From Bugula neritina (taxonomy: Eukaryota; Animalia; Bryozoa): 64,000 bases of DNA. Below the pieces are notes generated by a model, which was not told the origin of the DNA, did not search any database, and worked only from the letters and a program-made list of their open reading frames with translations. The DNA lies in the NCBI GenBank assembly GCA_964035545.1, contig OZ037771.1:4599628-4663627 (forward strand). The letters are read 5' to 3'. The position numbers were made by a program, and so were the translations under genes. How positions within the stretch are numbered: the stretch's first letter is position 1; every line of letters starts with the position of its first letter. This document shows positions 987 to 61,627 of this stretch, piece by piece.

Positions 987-9445
<8,459 letters not shown>

Positions 9446-42787: not shown

Positions 42788-44799
42788 ATGCAGGTGAGCC
42801 ATCTTTTTATATTTGATAATGGTGATATTATATGCTATTCTTTAGCAAATAAATCACAACTGAAATCATTTTAACATTTCACTCTTCAAAACTACGACTA
42901 TTAGTACTTGCAATGGTAATTTAGCTTAGTATAAAAAACAATACTTCCATATATATTTCTCATAAGCTGTTTATCTGAAACTGTAGTGTAAGAATTAAAC
43001 TGCAACAAATTCTCTTAGTATGTATATCTTCCATATAATTTTGAATTACTATTATTCAAGTAAAACTTATACTTATATAATATACAAAATTAAATTTTGT
43101 AGGTTGGGATTGGACCAATTCTGACCTCTGTACTTATGCTGGGCCTATCAGCCTACCGTATCACTGATACTCAGTAAGTTTAGTATAATTATTAAACATG
43201 TAATTATCTTCTCTAAACTGAGCATAAGCTGCACAAACTCCACTTCTTTATGGTTCTAGAAATGCATAGACTGCAATATTTGAATGTAAATTATTTAAAC
43301 ATAATATTTGAACATAACCATATGATATAATACTTTAACCTTTGTGTAGATCTCAACAAGAACCTCTCCCTCCAAAACGTATGAAGACTTGGTACCCAGG
43401 AATAGATGATGAGGAAGAGATGAGTGACCCTGAATGTATTGACTCGATGTCTGTGTCACCTTATGTGTCTGATATTGAGAGAGAGAATAGAGTCAGTGGA
43501 GAGGATAACAGAGATAGTGACTCATCATCTGCTACTCTGTTGGTCACTGAAACTCCATCTCCTTCCACCTCAGCAAAAGTGACTCACCGTAAGAAGAAAT
43601 ATAAAAAGTATGTTTAAAATATCACAACAAACAGTCTGCATGATTGTCTGTGTTAGCTATTCTTATAATGACACAGGTTTTAAAAACATATATTTTATAA
43701 CCATTTAAACTAGTTTTAGCAAATTTGCTTTGAATGTAAATCCTTAAGTTTTAAGTTTTATAACTCTGTGCAGAAAAGAGAGGACTTTTAACATTTACTA
43801 ATCTGCTCAATACAAATTTTGTCACTGCATGTCAGTAATTGGCTTTAAGTTCTTAACAATTTAAAAAATAATCCTATATGTAGTTATAATATTTTGTTTG
43901 TTCATCTTTGAACAGAATAAGACAATGCAAACCAGTATTTCCAAGACGCATGAAGACTTGGTACCCAGAAATGATTGGACAGGATGTTGAAGAGATAAGT
44001 GACCCTGAATGTATTGACTCGATGTCTGTGTCACCTTATGTGTCTGATATCGAGAGAGAGAATAGAGTCAGTGGAGAGGATAGTGGAGATAGTGACTCAT
44101 CCTCAGCTGAAACTACAACTCCCTCTACACCAGCAGTGGTGATTCGTCATAGGAGGAGATATAAAAAGTATGTCAAACATACATTTAGCTTTTGTTAGAG
44201 CTTCCAAAGCTTTGAATAATAAACATCATTCTCGAGTTTATCACAAACTAATTTAATGAAAATAATATAACTGTAGAATTTGATACAATACTGTAAGCTT
44301 GTGTTACTAAGCAGCACTTATACATGTTATATAATCCCAATTTCCAACTTTTCACTTCAAACTAAACGTTCAACTTTTTGAAAGACAACTCCATTTTTCC
44401 TTACATGTAGTTTCCCATTTCTCATAAATAATACTAACAATTAGGCGTTATTTATAACTCCATGTCATTAGATCACCTCTAAGACTATATTTTGTGTTTT
44501 ATTGTGTTATTAGGAGATCTCAGTGCAAGTATCCAAGACGCATGAGGACTTGGTACCCAGAGATGATTGGAGGAGAACTTGAAGAGAGCAGTGACTGTGA
44601 ATCTGTGGGCTCAGCTATGCCAGTCTCTCCTTTCGTGTCAGACATGGAAGTCTCGGATGATGAAGAATGTGGTTGCATAAAATCAAGACCCACCAGGTTT
44701 TTCAGACGCACCTTATACAGGTTATTTGGTGTAGCAAAGCCCATCATCTGGTGGTCTTGCAGATTGATGCGGTTCATGTACTACTGGCAGCTTTTCTGA
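42788..44799 (+). CDS. Uncharacterised protein with three exon-encoded repeats (PxRMxTWYP...SDxE...VSPxVSD); ~290 aa, 5 coding exons
   Basis: Exons 42788-42793 (MQ), 43103-43173, 43350-43607, 43916-44167, 44514-44799; all GT-AG and in phase (873 nt). Hydrophobic N-terminus MQVGIGPILTSVLMLGLSAY, three homologous modules, basic/aromatic C-terminal tail. Confidence 0.78.
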
Positions 44800-47419: not shown

Positions 47420-49485
47420 TTAATAAACCTCCACATCAGCACATTGGTAATAAGGACCAAATCCTGGCTTATTGGTTACGTAGGTGACCTAGAAAATTTA
47501 ATAAATGTCCTATACAGTGCTTTTATTAATAGTATTTATACATTAACTACATTTAATCAGCCACTTTGAATACTTTCGAACCATTGAAAAGTTTGAGAGT
47601 TTTTTAAATTATGGTTTTCAATAATGTAAACATATATATGTTCAAAAGTATTTATAAAAGGCATCATTGCGCATTGTTTATTTCTAAACACTGTAACCGT
47701 ATACAAAGCGGTATTTCCTTCTATGAAGTTAAACTTGTTTATCTTAATTATGTAACTTTTGAGTTAATCAATTAGTCCCAAGCTTTTCAACGGCGTTAGA
47801 AATAAGTATCATGACCTTAAGAAAAAAACAAGTAGCATATTAGGGTTGAAAAAAAATTTAAATGCCAAAGCTTTAAAATAAATAACGACAAAAATCTTAC
47901 CTAGAAAAGTAAAAGATACATGTGGAGTAAAATATATAAGTTGAAAAATGAAAATAAAAAATGGCACTCTATAGTAATTACATAAAAATAAAATACAGAC
48001 AAGGTTTAAATGTTTTATGAAGATTGGATATTTACCTGAACAGTTTTGATAGCATTGCCTTCAATTGGTGGTGTTGGAAGATTTTCAACATAGAGGTAGA
48101 GTGGAGGTTTGCCAGTGTCTGGGATCCGTATAACTTCCCTATGTACTACTATCCCCTCTAGTGTCTCGCTGTTCCACACAATGGAGAAGTAGCCCTGAGA
48201 AAGGATACTTTCACATAAAACACAATTTTGGAACTTTTAATGTTTATTATTTTAAATCAGTGTAGTTTTGTAGAGCAACGACTATATTGCACAAACAGCT
48301 ATTCCAGTATATCCTCATACTACATTTCTAGCGTATACGTAGAAACCTAAACTGAGATACATGAAATATAATACTGGAAAAAAAAATTGATAGATAAAAA
48401 AATATATTTGAAATATAATATTAGTAAAATAATAATGATGATAATAGTAACAGTAATAATAACAGAAACGGCAACGGTAACAGTAACAGCAATAGTATAT
48501 TTTTAAAACTTACAGGGTTAAATGGGTTCAGATGATTGGCATTCTGTTGAAAAATTATGGTGTAATTGGAGTCTTGCCTGTAAGAAAACACCAAAAAAAA
48601 TTGCATTTAAATTTGCAATGTTTCAAATGGCAGAGTTACTGTTTGCTATATTTATGATTGAAGTAAAACACAAAGTTATTATTAACAATCATTGTATGTG
48701 GGTATGTATAGTTCAACAATTATTGTATCACATGCAAAACATATACTTATGCATCACTTTAATTTGGTTTTAATCTGATGGTAGAGGCTACTTCAAATTC
48801 TAGACATTGAAACCATCTCTTAATAATTAAATGAATAAATTAAAAGCAATACATCTGAGAAATCACTCTTACTGTATCTTTATTTGCGGGGGCTCTACTG
48901 GTCGTCCCCCACATGGAAAGGTTCTCAAGAAGCAATTCTGAGCAGCTAAAACAGTTAGAATTTATTGTGCAGACTTACGCATCAAGATTTTCACTGAATA
49001 ATTAATTAATGTTATTATTTATAAGCATGTCTTATATTTTTGTAGTTAACAAAATAGACAAGAAAAAATAAAAAGAAAAATTATAAAAATATAATTAAAT
49101 TCTACTTCATTTAGCTGCATTGTAAAGTTGTGTGCCATTTAACACAATTTACTTCATGATCAGCAGACAGTACAGGTAAAACGTTTACATTTAAATTTAC
49201 AATACTGCTATTATAAATGTTATAAATTATAGCAATAATTATTTACCATGCAGCAGCATAAACATAAATATATCACACATGTAAAAAAGAAATAAATATA
49301 TAGAAATTAGTGACAAAATTTTAGCTATAAGAAAGTATAAATTCAAATATTAAAATGAAATGTTTCCAAACGATACCTGGTTTATTAAGACCTTCCAGAG
49401 AACCTCTCTGGTGAGGATTGAGTAAACAGAGATGACCAGAAGCTGCTGCCACACAAACCATTAATAATAATACACTTCTATACAT
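47420..49485 (-). CDS. Secreted His-brace LPMO-like (putative copper-binding) protein, paralog A; 157 aa
   Basis: Exons 49485-49377, 48945-48873, 48577-48514, 48194-48036, 47488-47420. MYRSVLLLMVCVAAASG|HLCLLNPHQRGSLEGLNKPAAQNCFLRTFPCGGRPVEPPQIKIQQDSNYTIIFQQNANHLNPFNPGYFSIVW...IPDTGKPPLYLY...VQVTYVTNKPGFGPYYQCADVEVY*. Confidence 0.88.
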
Positions 49486-50375
49486 GTTGAATATAGGAAT
49501 ATAATTTTAGTTTGATGAAGCTGATCAGTGGTCGGCCTTTCCTCTCCCAAGACTGAGGTAGAATGACCGTTTCACAAACATCTATTCTCCTTATAGTAAT
49601 GTATAGTGTGTTGCACCAGGTGAACTTTCTACATTTTATGACGGTACATATAAAAGGTTTAGCCGGACCTTCTATATACTGGATGGCCACCTGCTCTTTT
49701 TTCAGGAACAACTAATTGTCCTAATTTTAGACTTTGAATGACCCAGACTGGTTAGTATATATAACAGGATATATGCTGAGTCTGCTGGTACAGAACCCTT
49801 AAGAACTTGTGGTTTGTGGCCATGTTTATAATTTCAGGCAACTTATAGGAGCATGTGCTTTAAGCTATACCAGTTTATGCAAAATCACAAAGTCATAAAT
49901 TACATACAATTCTTTCAGGTGAAAAGACTAGCGAAGAATGAGTAAAACTTAAAATTGGCTTTATCTATGTATTAAATTGCATAAAATTGCATAAATATTA
50001 TAGAATCACAGCAACTTTTGCATTTCCACCTAAATGTCTCCTAAGATATAATAGGGGAAGGCGGGTTAGTTAGACCAAAGTTTTCGTTTTTGAGCATAGC
50101 CTTTCAATAAACTGACTGCCTATCTGAAGACTATAATACCATATTAAGCTGCTTATGCCCCCTCAAAACTAGATGTATAAACATTTTACTCATTAAGATA
50201 AAGCCAGTTTTTTCTGTAAGAATATTTTCTTACACAGCACGCCTCGGCAGAGGGTGAGTTAAACCGCCCTGTGGAAAAGTTGAGCCAGTGCCATTTTTCA
50301 TATATAATATATAAATTGTTTTACCTATTTAGCAAGCTGAAAACAACTCATTGGAATATATATATATATATAGTG

Positions 50376-52324
<1,949 letters not shown>

Positions 52325-52645
52325 TAAATTTTGAAGCCAACCCTGTGGTTAGGTTGTGTGATGCAGCAGCTCAGAATAGCATGTAATAAAAGTCTTGAAT
52401 AAATGCATTAGTTTTAATATGAAAGCGAGCTAGAATCAGCAATTGATCAGAAGTAAACCAGACCATGTTTGCACAAAATGCAATGTAAAACAAAATTGAC
52501 TGAGAACACAACCCTTAAGCAATATTAAAATGAAAGTCAAGATATATATGAGTATTTAATTGTGGCAAAAATGAAAAGTGTCGGAGAATCTTCAATATAA
52601 TCAAACGTTACTTTAACATCTCAACCAACCAACCAGCTGACCACT

Positions 52646-52795
<150 letters not shown>

Positions 52796-54342
52796 GCAAG
52801 TCATTCAAAAAAGTAGTTTGAATAAAACCCAACAACTACTTCTTGCAGATAAACTAAAATGAAATAAGACAAAATTACTGTAATGTTATATTCATTCGCT
52901 ACCCAAAAAAGGCAGAGCCGAAATAGGTAAGGTGAGTGAGGACTATAGTGTTATGTTTAAAGAAAATTATATGTGGTGAGTTATGTTATAGAGTAATACA
53001 ATAATTCTTCTTTTCAAGTATGCTTATAAAACTAACGTAACCACAAATATTATATGTTTTTATCCGAAATTGAATATTTATCATCATAAAACTTTTTATG
53101 CAAAACTTACAAACTCTATCTAACTTGTGTACTCCTATACTATTTTTATGTTATGGTAAAAATGATTCAATTTTTTATGTTAGTAAAAAGTCCTAAACCT
53201 GTTTTGGTAAAATAGTTTTAATAGGTTTTTAAAAAGATGTAGGTTCTTTCTAATTTATACATACATGCATTTGTTTTTCAACGACTACTTTTAAAAAAAA
53301 AATGATTTATGATTCGATGTATTCATTATTTAGATTAGTATTTTTATACAGCAACTCATTTGCTGTACCTATTGGTTAGTTGCATTATTCATTAAATTCT
53401 TGCAGACACAGATACTTGCTGCCAGAAGTACATAACACTCTTTAACTTAGTTAACATTTGGTGTAATATGTTCATTAAGGTTTGTTTAAAGTATATAGTT
53501 ATAATTGTATAATTAATTTTATTCTATATCAGTCAGCACTAATGCATATTTTGTATATCACAGCCGCATGGGCTCAATGCACACCCAGCCCTAATCTGAA
53601 GCATCTGGTCTTAAAACATAATAATATAACAATATAGGTATATAGACATAGTTGTAACATATTATGTGCATTTAATTCCATTTGATTCTATTACAAAATA
53701 TTTTTACTGCAGCTAGCTATTTAACAAAAAGGTAATTATTAATTAAATATAATTTTACTTATATATGACCTACTTTAAGTTTAAAATCATCACATGCTCA
53801 TTTGAACTGGAATATATCACAGGCAATTAAATTATGATGCAACATGTGAATATTTGAATCTGTGACAATATATAGAGCTTTGCTGCACAACTATTCATAT
53901 ATTTTAGTTTAATAAATTATAAGTTCAAAACTATAGATAAACTATTTTTAGACTCTAACAACAAACTTGCTGTAGATAAGATCTACTTTATTGTGAAAGA
54001 ATTGAAAGAATAAATTACCTCTAACTTATTTTGTGTAGTAAATAACATGAATTATGGAATACTCTTTTAAATATATATTTGTGCAAAGTTTGCAATACTC
54101 TGAAAAATGTTTTTACTATAACTATAACATAATTTTACATAAGAGAATCCAATTTTATATTTTGTTCAAAAGCAAAAGACTCAGTTGTGCAGTGTGCATC
54201 TTTCAATCAGTATTTAATTATTTGATGCTTATGCTAGTTTCATTAGCCTTTAAAAGATGTGTACTATAATTAATGTTTAATTGTACTATATAAATAATAT
54301 ATGATGAGCAATATAATAGCTTGTAGGCTCCTCTAAGTTGCT

Positions 54343-56942
54343 TTAATAGACTTCTACATCTGCACATTGGTAATATGGACCAAATCCTGGGTTGTTGGTA
54401 ACATAAGAAACCTGAAAAATTGAAACAATCGTAACAAATTGTTCAACAAAAAATGTAAACACCTTTAAAATTATTCCTAAAAGCATATAAAAAGTTTATA
54501 GTGATTAAAATGTGACTTTTAAAGTGTGAAACAGTAAAAAACATCAGCAACAGTTGAAAGAATAAAATTATCTTTACAGATAATTACCACATACATAGCG
54601 TAACCTTTAAAATGCTGACCATCTCACTTGAGGCTTTAAGTTTTTAGTAATAAAATAAATTTAATCTCTTGCAACGCTTACCTGGAGAACTTTGGTAGGA
54701 TTGTTGAGAGCCGGTGGAGTTGGAACAGTTTGAACATAGAGGTGGAGAGGAGGCATACCTGTATCAGGTATCAACGCAACCTGTTGATGTGTCAGGCCAT
54801 CATCTGCATAGCTGGCCCAGCTTATGCTGAAGTGACCCTGAGAATTATATTGTAATATAAAAAACTGTAAAACTTTTGTGTATTATAGGATATTGTATAA
54901 TAACATACTTAGGTTGTATATACGTTATAATATAACTTGATATATTGCTTAGTATGCTGTATAAAATGCATGACATACAATATATAGATAGTATATTAAA
55001 TATGTTATATGCTATATTCTATAACTTATATAAAATAATTGTTTTTAGCATATTACAATAAAATGAATTTGTCTAAAAATACATCATATGTGGTACAGTA
55101 TAAAATACTTTTACAAGTAATTTTTATTTAAATTTCAAATTATTTTGCTAGAAAGTTTGCACATCATGTAATAAATTTTACTCTAAATTTCTCATAAGCA
55201 TAGCTAACATTTTCTATGATAACAGAATATTTCAATGCAAAAAACTGTTGTGAAGCTCTGTACTGGTGATATTGAGATTTAAGCCATCTTTTCTCAAATA
55301 TTCTATGATTGCATGCAATATTAATTACTTTATATTTTAATTATAGCAGTCAAACATAAAAAGCACATTATTACATTTCACTTTCTGCAATGCGAATATG
55401 CAAACATTTATGGCCAATAATACAACTTCCACTAAAAGCACCTGTTACTGAAATTAACAGAGCAATATAAATTCTGTAATATAAAATATTCTTAGACTCA
55501 GGAAACTATGAACGCTATTTTTAGTTACAAGAAGAGTGGAGTTCTACATCTATATACCATGTTATATGCTGGCAGGTGTGGCTATACTTACTGGGTTCAA
55601 AGGATTCAGATGGTTGACATTTTGTTGAAATATCACCGTGTAGTTATCATTCTGTCTACAACAAAGAAAAAATTTGTTTAGATAAATGACAGACTTTCAT
55701 TGTTATTAGATTTTACCTAGCTGCATGGTTTTCTAAACATTTTTTTTTTGTAAATTACTTATTAGAACAAAATAGCAGCATATTTTGCTTGAATAGTGAA
55801 TATTAATCAGTTATTCCACTGAGTTATGACATTGTTAGTTGTCAGAGACTCTTCTTAGAAAATTGAAGTGAGATTATATTTTTTCCTGTAAACTGAATGT
55901 TAATTATTTTGTACTCTTTGAATTTTAAACTCAATAGTTCTAGACTACTACAACTAAAGAAATGAATCTAGTTTTACATCCTGCATATATAGGCTTTTAC
56001 TATATGGAACACATTTTACGTATATAATATATTATTTATACAGTACAGCTACCTGTGCAGGAGTATTCTTTATATAGAATGTTATAATAATATATGCTTA
56101 GAATACATTTCATATTACATACATATTTTGATGTTTTACTCATCATTGTTAATGCAGGTACTGAGGCTTTGATGTCACACAAACTGGTTCACCTGAAGAC
56201 CTAATTTTGATACTTTTTATAAGCAGGTATAATAATAGCTTTGAGAGCTTATTATAACATGTTATGAACAGATTGATTCTACATACTACTTTCAGTGGTC
56301 AGCATGCTATAAAATCATATGTAGACATAATACTACTCATCTTACTTTATCATTAGTTGAGGGGGCTCTGTTGGACGTCCCCCACATGGAGCTGTCCTGA
56401 GGAAACAGTTTTGTGCAGCTAAAAGAATAGGAAGTTGTCAACTAGTACCAAAGAAATTTCTCATAATAATTAGGAGTTGTCAAATCTGCAAGTTTTTAGG
56501 AAAGCACAATTTTTGAATGGCAATTTTTTCCAGTATATATGGTATTGTACCCCTTTCGATGCCTACACCATTAAGTGCAAAGGTATATGAAATTCTAAGT
56601 ATATGTTATAGATAATGTTCTAGTGAAATATCATATACTATCGATGCAAAAAGTAATTTTTTATTGCAATTGAAAAATACATGAAAACAGTGGGAAATTT
56701 GTTTTCAATTTTCTACTCTATCAGCCAAGTTTTTGCTAAAAAGTGTCAACTTAAATTTAAAACATAGAGAGAAACAAAAACACTGAAATAGAAAATAGCT
56801 CAACAAAAATAAGACTATTAAAGTTTACTTTACCTGGCTTATTAAGACCTTCTATGGACCCTCTTTGGTGAGGATTCACTAAACAGAGATGACCCGAAGC
56901 CAAGGCCACACAGCAAACAAAGACTAAGACACTCTTACACAT
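54343..56942 (-). CDS. Secreted His-brace LPMO-like (putative copper-binding) protein, paralog B; 156 aa
   Basis: Exons 56942-56834, 56418-56346, 55655-55592, 54837-54682, 54411-54343. MCKSVLVFVCCVALASG|HLCLVNPHQRGSIEGLNKPAAQNCFLRTAPCGGRP...YTVIFQQNVNHLNPLNPGHFSISW...IPDTG...LQVSYVTNNPGFGPYYQCADVEVY*. Same intron positions as paralogs A and C. Confidence 0.88.
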
Positions 56943-59094
56943 CCTGACAATTATAGTACTGCCTGTGCACTGCCCACTGATGTTCACGTCTTTCCTTCAC
57001 AGACTGAAATGACAGACCGCAGCAGTTTGTCCTTAACCTATAGAGTGAATCCCATGCCCTACTGATCTACTCACTACATTTATATTGCTGGTATCATATT
57101 GGTGGTTTTGATATATAGGTCACATGTTACTCTCTACACCAGCACTTTATTTTAGGCTAAAAGATGCTCTATGTTTTATAAATAAATTTTTAAAGTGTAA
57201 TTTTCAATGTTACTTTGTTTAACATTTGCTTTCTCCATAACATTGAAAAATATTCAAAGCAATAATATTATATTTATAATTATAATTTATAATTGTAATT
57301 ATATATACTTATATAACAAAGTGCATTGTATACATGTTCAAGCAAAAAGACCCACTTTATAATTGACAGATGTAAGCTATCTATATATTAATATACCTTT
57401 CTAATGTACTTCTTAATGAAATAGTACAAATTATAATAAAAAACTATATGATACCATATATATGCTGCAACATATTATATAATATGTTGTGAGTATATTT
57501 TGCATATTGCAGTATACTGTTTATATATGCATTTATATATACATGTCCCATCACCTTATAATTATAGCATTAGAATGCTCACTAGTGCACGTCATCATTG
57601 TATTACATGAGAAAATCTTAGTAAACTTTTTATGAAACAATAACTTACTATAACTACAAATCAAAATAAATTTGTGATTTTCAATTTGCAACCATTATAA
57701 AACTTGAAAAAATTTTTATTTACATAACTAAAGAAAGTTTGCAAATTGACAAAAAATTGTTCTAGTTAACACCCATACTAATTATAACTACCAGCTATTT
57801 TCAATCAAAAAGTTGAGTTATCTGGAAAAAATTTTTTATTATGCTAGCTTGCATTACAAAAGCAATCTTTCGAATTTTCTTTAGCAGTCTAGTTTTAGCT
57901 ATAGTCGTTCATCAATTATAACTTTCCTTATGCGATCACTTACTTAAAGTGCATCAAATAGAATCTCAGCAATTAATTAAGACGCTTGCAGAGCTTTAAA
58001 TTGTGTAATGAGTTATTTCCCTTTGTTCTAAATTTTATGTGATTATAGAACTGTTTTTTTTATATAATATTATGTGTTATTGTTTTAAGAACATCTGATT
58101 AAGAAGAGTAAATTAAACTGTTGAAATAGTCATGTATTGCTAATTTAGAAAGTGGTTTGAAAGAAGATATGACAAAGTCAAATCAACTGAAACTAAGTAA
58201 TTTTTACAGATAATTATACTAACAAAATAAAATTGATATTTGAAAGTTTTAAGACACCATTTTATTGAGTTGTGCTGAAAGTATTTTTTCTATTTCAAGT
58301 TCCTATTTTTTTAATTTGTTAATTTTTTTACAAAATGAAACTTGAAGTTTACCAGTTGACAGAAATAATTAAAACAGCATAGGGTAGAGCAGAATGCATT
58401 TTACATAGAAGTGAGGTAATTTGATTTCCTTACATTTGCAAGAACATATAAATTAATTGGCCAGTCGCATTTGATATAATAAAACAAGCGCTAAAATTTT
58501 TTTTGATACTGTTTGAGATGGAGTAATAGCACAACCTATAATTTATTTTTCAGAACAAAAGATTTGCAAAATCACATTGATGATCTTAAATCAGCTGTAA
58601 AAAGGCTTTTTGTTTGCGATTATTACTTGTAAATTTTAGCAGTTTCTGGTATGTGAGCCAATGGTGCATTAAACAATATTTGTGAAATTCTTTTACACAT
58701 TTAAAAATGATAAAATTAGCTGCACGAATGTTGATAACAGATTTACATGTATTTCATTCTTATTTTTTAACTAGAACCGGTTTTTGTAATGACATTTATA
58801 ATTATAGCTACCACATGCATGATTAAAATAATTATATTGCCTTTATTACGAATAAAAGCACAAAACACATAATAGTTGTTAAAGGAAATTAACATGATTG
58901 AGCATTACTATACCTATTACCTGTTATAAAGAGTTTTAAATATATTTGTTAAAAGTTATTAGCAACATTATAATTGTAAAAATTTACATAACGAATCAGG
59001 TATGTATAATACTTGGTATACTAGGTATATATAAAGCTGTTTACTAAATATGCTGTAACTTTGTGAATGAAACTTTGTAGCCCTTTCAATCATA

Positions 59095-61627
59095 TCAATA
59101 CACTTCTACGTCTGCACATTGGTAATATGGACCAAAACCTGGACTATTGGTAACATAGGTGACCTACAAGATGAACCACACATGTTATATACAACAGAGA
59201 AGGATATCTATTTAGACAATAACCTTTCTCCTCTTATGCAATACATTTCAGAGCAAATAAACTTATTTTTACAAACTTTGATCTTTGCTTAATTGCTTTA
59301 CGATATAAAAGGGCAATATACTGTTAGAAGAACATTCTACTGTTTTTAGCTGTTGTATGATATAGATTTGACAGAACAATTTTCTATAAAATTTTGATCA
59401 ACCAGGTGTTTGTAAAAAAGCACCGACATACATTATCAGTCCTAATTGTTGAGTATTTGTTCGTTATAATTGCATGGTATATTAAGTCTGTAAAAACATT
59501 TTATAATAATTTGCAAATCATGACTGAAATGAAGTGAATTACTGAGAAAATTTTAAGATTGTTAGCATAAAATAGTTTATAACTTATTCTACCAATCATT
59601 ATTATAGATAAGGGAAGTTCCACAATTATTTATTTTGTTAGTTTTTAAATTATTCTACAACTTTTTTTCTATTCTCAATAAATTTTCAATTCTTCAGAGC
59701 CAACATAAATAAAGTTAAACTCAAATTTTTGCAACTCTCTCAGTGTAAGGCAACAAATATTGTAATATTTGAGTTACCTGGAGAACTTTGAATGGGTTGT
59801 TCATAGCTGGTGGAGTGGCCACATTCTCTGTGTAGAGGTAGAGGTAAGGTTTACCTGTGTCAGGTATACGGGCCACCTCCATATGACTAACTGAACCATC
59901 GTCTTCGTAGCTCGCCCAGATAATGGTGAAATAACCCTAAACATAGTGTTTAGACTAAATAATTTTATTATACGAAATTGAACTTATTAATAGATTCTAT
60001 TGTTTTAACTTTGGTTGAGAGGCTATTTATCAGCAGCTAGAAACTTCTTTATGAAAACTTTTCTATGTAGAAGCCAACCATTTAATCTTTACAAATACGT
60101 TTGGGACACAATTATTTTTTAAAAAATGCGTTTTTGAGGCAAACCCTACATAAAGCTTGCTTCACTCAATCTTTTATATTAATCATTAGATGTGTGTGGT
60201 GTTTATGGTAAGGCTGTTGATTTGAAATGTATAGATTATATAATATTTGAACCGTATAAATGCAAGTAGTCTTTTTATATATGCACTCATATAGTATACA
60301 TCACTTAAATATACAGTATACAGTATACCATAAAATATATGAAATATGTACTTATACTATACAAACTTTTTTAGGATTCTTACAGTGTCGCTATGATGAT
60401 TCTCATTAATAGTAAAACTGAAAGCCCTAAGCAGCAAACTATCGACAAGTTATAATTTAGAGAAAAAATAAATTTTAATATATTTACCGGGTTGAGAGGG
60501 TTTCGATGGTTGACATTCTGTTGAAATATTACGGTGTAAGTGTCATTTTGCCTACAAAAACAAGCTTGTAGTGTAACTCAATATAAGTCATTTATATTTA
60601 TTAAATTTTTCTAGCCTAATTTGTTTATTGATTGCAGATAATGCTGAAAACTATTTTTTTATATTAAAAAAGCTGTTGAAACATTTATAAACAAAATTAA
60701 AAATATTAAGTAGATATATTTTTGTCACAATATAAGTTTTTCAAATTTAATATTAGAATGCAAGATATTTATAAGATATTGTTATTACTATGTATATTCT
60801 AGCTACCAAAAATACACAGCTGTTGGTAATAACTCCAGTATAAAAAATAACCTAATTGTCTTACATATTTACTATCATAGTTTTAATCAAATGTTTCAAA
60901 CCAATTCAGATAAATTTTTAAAAGCTACAACCCTTAAAAGCATAAAGGGTTTGTATAATTTGAAAAAACTGATTTAAAAGGAAAGTTTCTTACTTAATTT
61001 TTATCTGAGGTGGTTGAAGCGGACGTCCTCCACAAGGAGCTGTTTTCAGGAAACAGTTCTGTGCAGCTGAAGAAGATATTAATAAAGATGTTGACAGAAA
61101 CATTTCAAATGCTAATAAATCTAAATATTTTATATGACAAAATTTTTATTACATTTTTGTGGTTTAATTTATTTTAAAAACTAAAACCCATATAGTATTA
61201 TTTACAGTTTCCCCCTTCCCCCCTTGAAAAAAATAATGATATACTAATAATTTATTTAAAGACTATAAAATATTATGCCTTTGTCATAACCACGGCTTAT
61301 AAGTACCAACTTCTAATGCAATGGAAAGCTAGCTGTGAATATTTTGAACATACAAAAAAGAGCCATAAATAAACATAATATGCTCAAGATACAAATAACT
61401 AGTAACAGGCTGGGTATTTCTGTGATATAATTTATATACTAGGTTAAAAGTGTGCAACACAACACTATATCAAAACCAATGCAAAGTTGAAAGAGCTAGT
61501 TTACATTATTAAGCTCACCTGGCTTATTAAGACCTTCCAGGGAACCTCTCTGGTGCGGGTTGACTAAACAGAGATGACCAGAAGCTGCTGCCACACAACA
61601 CACCAACAACACTAGACTTTGATACAT
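59095..61627 (-). CDS. Secreted His-brace LPMO-like (putative copper-binding) protein, paralog C; 157 aa
   Basis: Exons 61627-61519, 61066-60994, 60551-60488, 59936-59778, 59163-59095. MYQSLVLLVCCVAAASG|HLCLVNPHQRGSLEGLNKPAAQNCFLKTAPCGGRP...YTVIFQQNVNHRNPLNPGYFTIIW...IPDTG...LQVTYVTNSPGFGPYYQCADVEVY*. Confidence 0.88.

Follow-up and report, generated by a model that had tools for sequence, protein, structure and literature searches.

A minimal, secreted family of predicted LPMO-fold proteins in Bugula neritina, other invertebrates and protists

Three tandem genes of the bryozoan Bugula neritina, which we call A, B and C, are located in a 64,000-nucleotide stretch of DNA (the window throughout this text), part of contig C7 of a 216-Mb genome whose other contigs mentioned here are labelled C1, C4 and C5. 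These genes belong to an apparently unstudied family of minimal (~140 amino acids (aa) when mature), soluble and secreted proteins which, according to structural modelling, adopt the fold of lytic polysaccharide monooxygenases (LPMOs). The family is genuine and conserved, and within the LPMO/histidine-brace superfamily it forms a variant whose active site combines features in an unusual way. The trio and its landmarks are located as follows.

47420..49485, minus strand: gene A, 157 aa; exons 49485-49377, 48945-48873, 48577-48514, 48194-48036, 47488-47420; GT-AG introns, open frame
54343..56942, minus strand: gene B, 156 aa; exons 56942-56834, 56418-56346, 55655-55592, 54837-54682, 54411-54343; GT-AG introns, open frame
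59095..61627, minus strand: gene C, 157 aa; exons 61627-61519, 61066-60994, 60551-60488, 59936-59778, 59163-59095; GT-AG introns, open frame
49435..49485 (A), 56892-56942 (B), 61577-61627 (C), minus strand: signal peptide of 17 aa ending A-S-G, with a hydrophobic core and small residues at -3 and -1
49432..49434 (A), 56889-56891 (B), 61574-61576 (C), minus strand: codon of His1, the predicted N-terminal copper ligand, directly after A-S-G (precursor position 18)
48532..48534 (A), 55610-55612 (B), 60506-60508 (C), minus strand: codon of His59, the predicted second brace His, within FQQNxNH
47450..47452 (A), 54373-54375 (B), 59125-59127 (C), minus strand: codon of Tyr131, the predicted axial aromatic, three residues before the last Cys

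An earlier note, made from the letters of the window alone, had described three intact five-exon paralogs with shared intron phases and exon lengths, and our rebuilt gene models agree with it in every checkable detail. Exon lengths are 109/73/64/159/69 nt in A and C and 109/73/64/156/69 nt in B, all 12 introns are GT-AG with phases 1, 2, 0 and 0, and there are no internal stops. The other elements that the note had listed, namely a 17-aa leader ending A-S-G and followed by His, His59 in FQQNxNH, four Cys (mature positions 3/24/31/134, the last being 133 in B) and a terminal strand, are all present in A-C, whose proteins end in GPYYQCADVEVY. Its view that the introns had diverged under purifying selection on the proteins was also borne out: homologous introns of A, B and C gave no BLAST match to each other, and the proteins are pairwise 71-78% identical, with dS of ~1.0-1.1 and dN/dS of 0.13-0.22. 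This intact pattern is far beyond chance, showing that genes A-C are under purifying selection. The single sequencing run that covered the trio locus contained unspliced sequence only. Searches of Pfam, NCBIfam and the Atlas with single exons of the trio returned nothing useful, since the exons are too short as queries.

A genome search with exon 1 revealed five further intact paralogs, D-H, arranged in tandem at C1:21719529-21742400, with open frames and intron phases identical to those of the trio. Thus, the genome of Bugula neritina holds eight copies (A-H). Our models of paralogs D and G matched public predictions for this species (KAF6017736.1 at 100% and KAF6017738.1 at 99.3%, respectively), indicating that an independent annotation had reached the same kind of gene model.

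The fold was assessed with an AlphaFold (AF2) model of the mature protein of paralog D, standing in for A-C; full-length Pfam results likewise come from paralogs D and G and from homologs, while the joined models of A-C were compared locally only. Paralog D scored 144 bits to the family profile and the trio scored 142-151 bits. The model had a predicted local distance difference test (pLDDT) of 94.2 and a predicted template-modelling score (pTM) of 0.88. Foldseek matched it to AA9, AA10, AA11, AA15, AA16 and X325 proteins at E-values of 1e-5 to 1e-3. In VIA, the top match was the AA15 structure 5MSZ (Z 13.6, root-mean-square deviation (rmsd) 3.0, 129 aligned residues, 22% identity), followed by X325 (Z 11.9-12.1, rmsd 2.6) and by AA13, AA10, AA16 and AA11 at Z ~11-11.6. 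The top 16 rows held LPMO-fold proteins only and spanned residues 1-141, showing in the model an LPMO beta-sandwich over this whole length, as the earlier note had expected.

The structural alignments begin at residue 1 of AA15 and X325. In the profile alignment, His59 falls on the T-A-R-H brace His of the AA10 structure 5FTZ and the axial aromatic falls on the Phe of its N-A-F-Y-x-C-x-D end; through bacterial relatives, His59 also aligns to the Q-A-P-H His of TdAA15A. Tyr121 sits where AA10 has its core Trp. LPMOs can bind copper only after signal cleavage (PMC10952591). We strongly infer, from sequence and model together, that the signal peptide is cut after Gly17, which would lead to secretion with an N-terminal His1, and that a single copper is coordinated by His1 (amine and ring) and His59, above Tyr131. 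Copper binding by proteins of this family is, on the same grounds, very likely. The Cys positions suggest two likely disulfides, C31-C134, which is common to the bacterial relatives, and C3-C24. The Asp at position 91, which aligned near the Asp of the AA15 L-A-D-G motif, is probably structural.

An exon-1 profile retrieved 79 representatives of the family, and full-length members served as the next queries. The named members included sponges (Dysidea, Sycon, Oscarella, Halichondria and Corticium), Trichoplax, many molluscs, the annelid Owenia, the brachiopod Lingula, the bryozoan Watersipora, echinoderms, the hemichordate Ptychodera, and the protists Physarum, Pyxidicula, Thecamonas, Entosiphon and two foraminifera. 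Every named carrier is either an invertebrate or a phagotrophic protist. Arthropods, nematodes, vertebrates and cnidarians did not appear among the named hits, but these searches were word-limited and do not imply absence. The trio described in the note is thus part of a wider family, with eight copies in Bugula and members in other invertebrates and in protists.

Nearly all family members are single-domain proteins of 150-170 aa named 'uncharacterized', and in the Atlas the family makes up one unnamed eukaryote cluster of 138 members. No study of the family came up in a literature search with family terms and six gene identifiers, although most subscription papers fell outside this search. 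A 2023 review lists AA15 as the sole animal LPMO family and X325/Bim1 for fungi (PMC10952591). In that sense the proteins are uncharacterised, as had been claimed, but the databases already touch them: PF20238 (Bim1/X325) matches 60/67 members at E<=0.01, and several carry the automatic UniProt name 'Copper acquisition factor BIM1-like'. We also observed a closely similar domain (template-modelling score 0.88) in a mollusc-dominated ESM Atlas cluster of 546 aa and 78 members. The member from the oyster Crassostrea angulata is intronless, as opposed to the five-exon genes of Bugula, and two metagenome members displayed a C-terminal stalk and a predicted membrane helix. A scan of metagenome DNA with the exon-1 profile yielded no confirmed locus.

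Conservation was counted over 92 non-redundant homologs, with 67 homologs used for the residue before His1 and for Pfam matches. His1 was present in 87/87 homologs covering the position, although the profile itself was seeded from His1 sequences. The residue preceding it was Ala, Ser, Gly or Cys in 67/67, which supports signal cleavage just before His. The second His was found in 91/92 homologs and is followed by an aromatic residue in 96% of them. Asp91 and the aromatic at position 121 are invariant, and further conserved positions besides the brace are Gln 9, 54, 118 and 133, Asn56 and Asx23. The axial position held Phe in 85 homologs, Tyr in four and Trp in one; thus, the axial Tyr described earlier is present in the trio but is a derived trait of the Bugula expansion in a family whose norm is Phe. 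The His at position 8, within NPHQRG, was considered as a copper ligand and rejected, as His occurs there in only 22/75 sequences. In six homologs, a Glu stands two positions ahead of the second His, at the site that corresponds to the Asp ligand of CopC.

The best fold match of paralog D raises the question of whether these are divergent, shortened AA15 LPMOs. Like AA15, the trio is animal and secreted, with His1, an internal His, and an axial aromatic three residues before the last Cys; it is Tyr in the trio, and AA15 tolerates Tyr or Phe (PMC5823890). However, the family profile did not match TdAA15A (5MSZ) at E<=10. The trio proteins are ~55 residues shorter when mature (139-140 vs ~195 aa) and have four Cys, compared with five disulfides in AA15 (PMC5823890). 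They also have Gly where AA15 has Glu two residues before the axial aromatic, so that the E-x-Y/F motif is missing, and their stretch from the His to the P-G-x-F strand exceeds that of TdAA15A by five residues. Of the trio, only gene A has Ala two residues before the second His, as AA15 does (PMC5823890). The Pfam model PF03067 matched 24/67 members at E<=0.01, covering only the C-terminal part of the model in the homologs examined. Meanwhile, a canonical AA15 gene is found elsewhere in the Bugula genome (C4:2370302-2374081, gene at C4:2371802), with PF03067 above cut-off, a G-H-G-Y-M start and a Q-E-E-F-x-x-C-A-D end. The missing sequence match, the shorter length, the four Cys, the lack of the Glu motif and the AA15 gene of its own in this genome together indicate that the family is not AA15, in agreement with the earlier note, and we consider it most improbable that these are simply divergent AA15 LPMOs that have been shortened.

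Among solved structures, the best sequence match was the AA10 enzyme SliLPMO10E (5FTZ, E 0.004). The family shares with chitin-active AA10 (SliLPMO10E, JdLPMO10A and CBP21) the axial Phe and the A-F-Y-x-C-x-D end, which matches the family consensus, and JdLPMO10A (5AA7) is equal to it in size. It differs from AA10 in being eukaryotic, in having no conserved Glu in the N-terminal loop region, and in having Pro, Ala or Gly instead of Asn two residues before the Phe. The closest profile relatives that we found were the SCE4755-family PMO-like proteins (NF043005) and their bacterial relatives (hhalign 99.5%, E 3e-22), which also have PCGG, a second His and Y-x-C-A-D. The best homolog scored 40.6 bits to NF043005, against a cut-off of 75, which places the family outside SCE4755. 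The bacterial relatives form a separate clade and have an extra C-x-x-C, an invariant Glu four residues before the second His and C-terminal tails, none of which are features of the trio family.

We favor, with doubt and conviction nearly in balance, a function as a glycan oxidase or peroxygenase. With no fourth protein ligand found, the copper would keep an open site. Small reductants would reduce the brace copper, which would then oxidise a glycan by means of O2 or H2O2; the most plausible substrate would be a cell-wall polysaccharide of food or prey in the gut or in digestive vacuoles. Catalysis is favored by the conserved axial aromatic, by the aromatic at the position of the AA10 core Trp, by the aromatic beside the brace in the wider family, and by the AA10-like C-terminal motif together with the absence of any fourth ligand found. 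Small size does not exclude catalysis, since a 142-aa AA10 is active according to the title of PDB 5AA7. Likewise, the gatekeeper Glu can occupy different sequence positions or loops (PMC10067821; bioRxiv 10.1101/2025.06.16.659879), which means that not finding it at its usual site does not decide the matter.

Several observations weigh against a catalytic role. The motif N/Q/E-x-F/Y of catalytic LPMOs before the axial aromatic (PMC6950343) is missing from the trio and from most homologs, which have Pro, Ala or Gly five residues before the last Cys (Gly in the trio). The usual catalytic gatekeeper was not found in the 92-homolog alignment, nor was any conserved Glu column. The nearest profile families are PF20238, whose Bim1/X325 proteins are not redox-active (PMC7529816), and the functionally uncharacterised NF043005. 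No carbohydrate-binding module was found in the family proteins. Two residues before the second His, where AA10 and AA15 have Ala, most members (78/92) have Leu, while B and C have Val. The trio, moreover, is without the family's aromatic after His59. Finally, the digestive setting, whether gut or vacuole, is a guess whose sole basis is the taxonomic range of the family.

A second reading is a non-catalytic secreted copper carrier or scavenger, similar to X325/Bim1 or CopC, which would pass brace Cu(II) to importers or to secreted cuproenzymes, or buffer copper in the gut or phagosome. PF20238 is the best Pfam family, and X325 (LaX325, 6IBH) ranks second among the structural matches and comes nearest in size, being similarly minimal. 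The gatekeeper Glu/Gln is absent from its canonical position, as is a binding module, and Bim1 itself binds copper without redox activity (PMC7529816, PMC9258870). The Pfam link is uneven: homologs scored 0-33.5 bits to PF20238 against a cut-off of 27, with 5/10 passing, paralog G at 23.6 and no full-length match for paralog D. In the trio, the loop that precedes the last strand is free of acidic residues, and the family has no conserved Asp there; we take this to be the counterpart of the Gly-rich loop on which X325 carries an Asp as fourth copper ligand. An axial Phe or Tyr is found in 98% of members, a feature shared with catalytic LPMOs but not with X325/Bim1, and the family is non-fungal. 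Furthermore, the trio lacks the glycosylphosphatidylinositol (GPI) anchor of Bim1 (PMC9258870); its chain ends four residues after C-x-D, with no Ser/Thr tail, and the median tail of the homologs is five residues. The lack of this tail and the retention of the axial aromatic indicate that the family is not X325/Bim1 proper. Metal-response elements were not enriched within 1 kb upstream of the eight Bugula genes (two found, 2.4 expected), although this is a weak test. We regard the carrier function as possible, if somewhat doubtful. Both alternatives that the earlier note had offered, a minimal LPMO and a carrier of the X325/Bim1 kind, therefore remain live.

A third function would be that of AA16, in which small reductants are oxidised to make H2O2 for partners, such as the AA15 of the same genome or the peroxidases of cuticle hardening or defence, with no cutting of polysaccharides. 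AA16 has a small LPMO fold, a normal brace and an axial Tyr, and makes H2O2 without cleaving polysaccharides (PMC10088020); its structural match to paralog D was Z 11.1-11.3 (MtAA16A, 7ZE9). The Bugula genome contains chitin-synthase-like genes in addition to the AA15 gene. Nevertheless, the second-sphere Gln of AA16 (PMC10088020) is absent from that position in the family, no sequence-level link to AA16 was found with the family profile among solved structures, and AA16 is fungal and oomycete. Such an oxidase is therefore an unlikely reading.

The Bugula copies provided insights into how the active site has varied within one genome. In the tree, all eight group with Watersipora (95/89), the trio forms a young clade (100/97), and H represents the ancestral type. 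The axial Tyr is carried by all seven derived copies, indicating a lineage-specific change from Phe. In the trio, moreover, the aromatic that follows His59 is gone and the loop preceding the axial Tyr has acquired a Phe. Six copies (A, B, C, D, F and H) retain His59, whereas E has Phe and G has Tyr in its place; the latter two may be mono-His or non-catalytic variants. Taken together, these sequence changes (the axial Phe to Tyr, the aromatic changes of the trio and the loss of His59 in E and G) suggest retuned or non-catalytic variants. That E and G are intact despite this loss, in a rapid lineage-specific expansion, is what would be expected if the proteins bound glycans or microbes and the brace were dispensable, at least in the Bugula expansion. 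Considering that His59 is kept in nearly every homolog and in 3/3 genes of the window, we judge this very improbable.

Returning to glycan oxidation, we tentatively postulate, with doubt prevailing, an ancient and unclassified LPMO family, among the smallest known, with which invertebrates and phagotrophic protists would oxidise glycans of prey or food without the canonical Glu/Gln gatekeeper, and for which the eight Bugula copies would be a natural series of active-site variants.

Other genes with an N-terminal His or LPMO-like domain occur in this genome. A different LPMO-like domain (G-P-C-G-G, C-x-x-C-T-L and F-W-T-C-A-D-V) occurs twice beside DOMON domains at C5:17430001-17450000, and both copies probably belong to the DOMON/EGF-linked branch of PMC6950343. 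A further distinct family is represented by a secreted His1 gene near C7 position 7349540, which starts with H-S-W-I-A-C-T-D-Y. Both the DOMON-fused genes and the H-S-W gene were rejected as members of the trio family, scoring <5 bits to its profile. As the DOMON-fused genes fall in another family, their presence is no sign that the trio family has a built-in electron donor. The Bugula genome may thus hold four kinds of His1/LPMO-like proteins.

The following features were also found in the window.

50356..52077, strand not assigned: dispersed 1.7-kb repeat bounded by long terminal inverted repeats, an insertion between genes A and B that is unrelated to the trio
4039-7686, plus strand: multi-exon collagen-like gene (PF01391)
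43342-44799, plus strand: three tandem related exon-like frames, with R-R-M-K-T-W-Y-P followed by S-P-Y-V-S-D and acidic Ser-rich stretches; no Pfam match

The repeat is foldback-like, with arms that are 85-91% complementary, and at least six near-full-length copies occur elsewhere at 85-90% identity. Its internal frame had no Pfam match and resembles a decayed Tc1/mariner transposase.

Based on these findings, the family is separate, old and single-domain, and is spread over many invertebrate phyla and protists, with features that lie between those of catalytic LPMOs and of the inert X325/Bim1. In this mix the axial aromatic is present, the canonical gatekeeper and the GPI anchor are absent, and no fourth-ligand Asp was found. 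At ~15 kDa and with two likely disulfides, these proteins are easy to test, and the Bugula paralogs are natural controls. If active, they would constitute a new LPMO family and challenge the need for a gatekeeper residue; if inert, they would represent a soluble histidine-brace copper carrier in animals.

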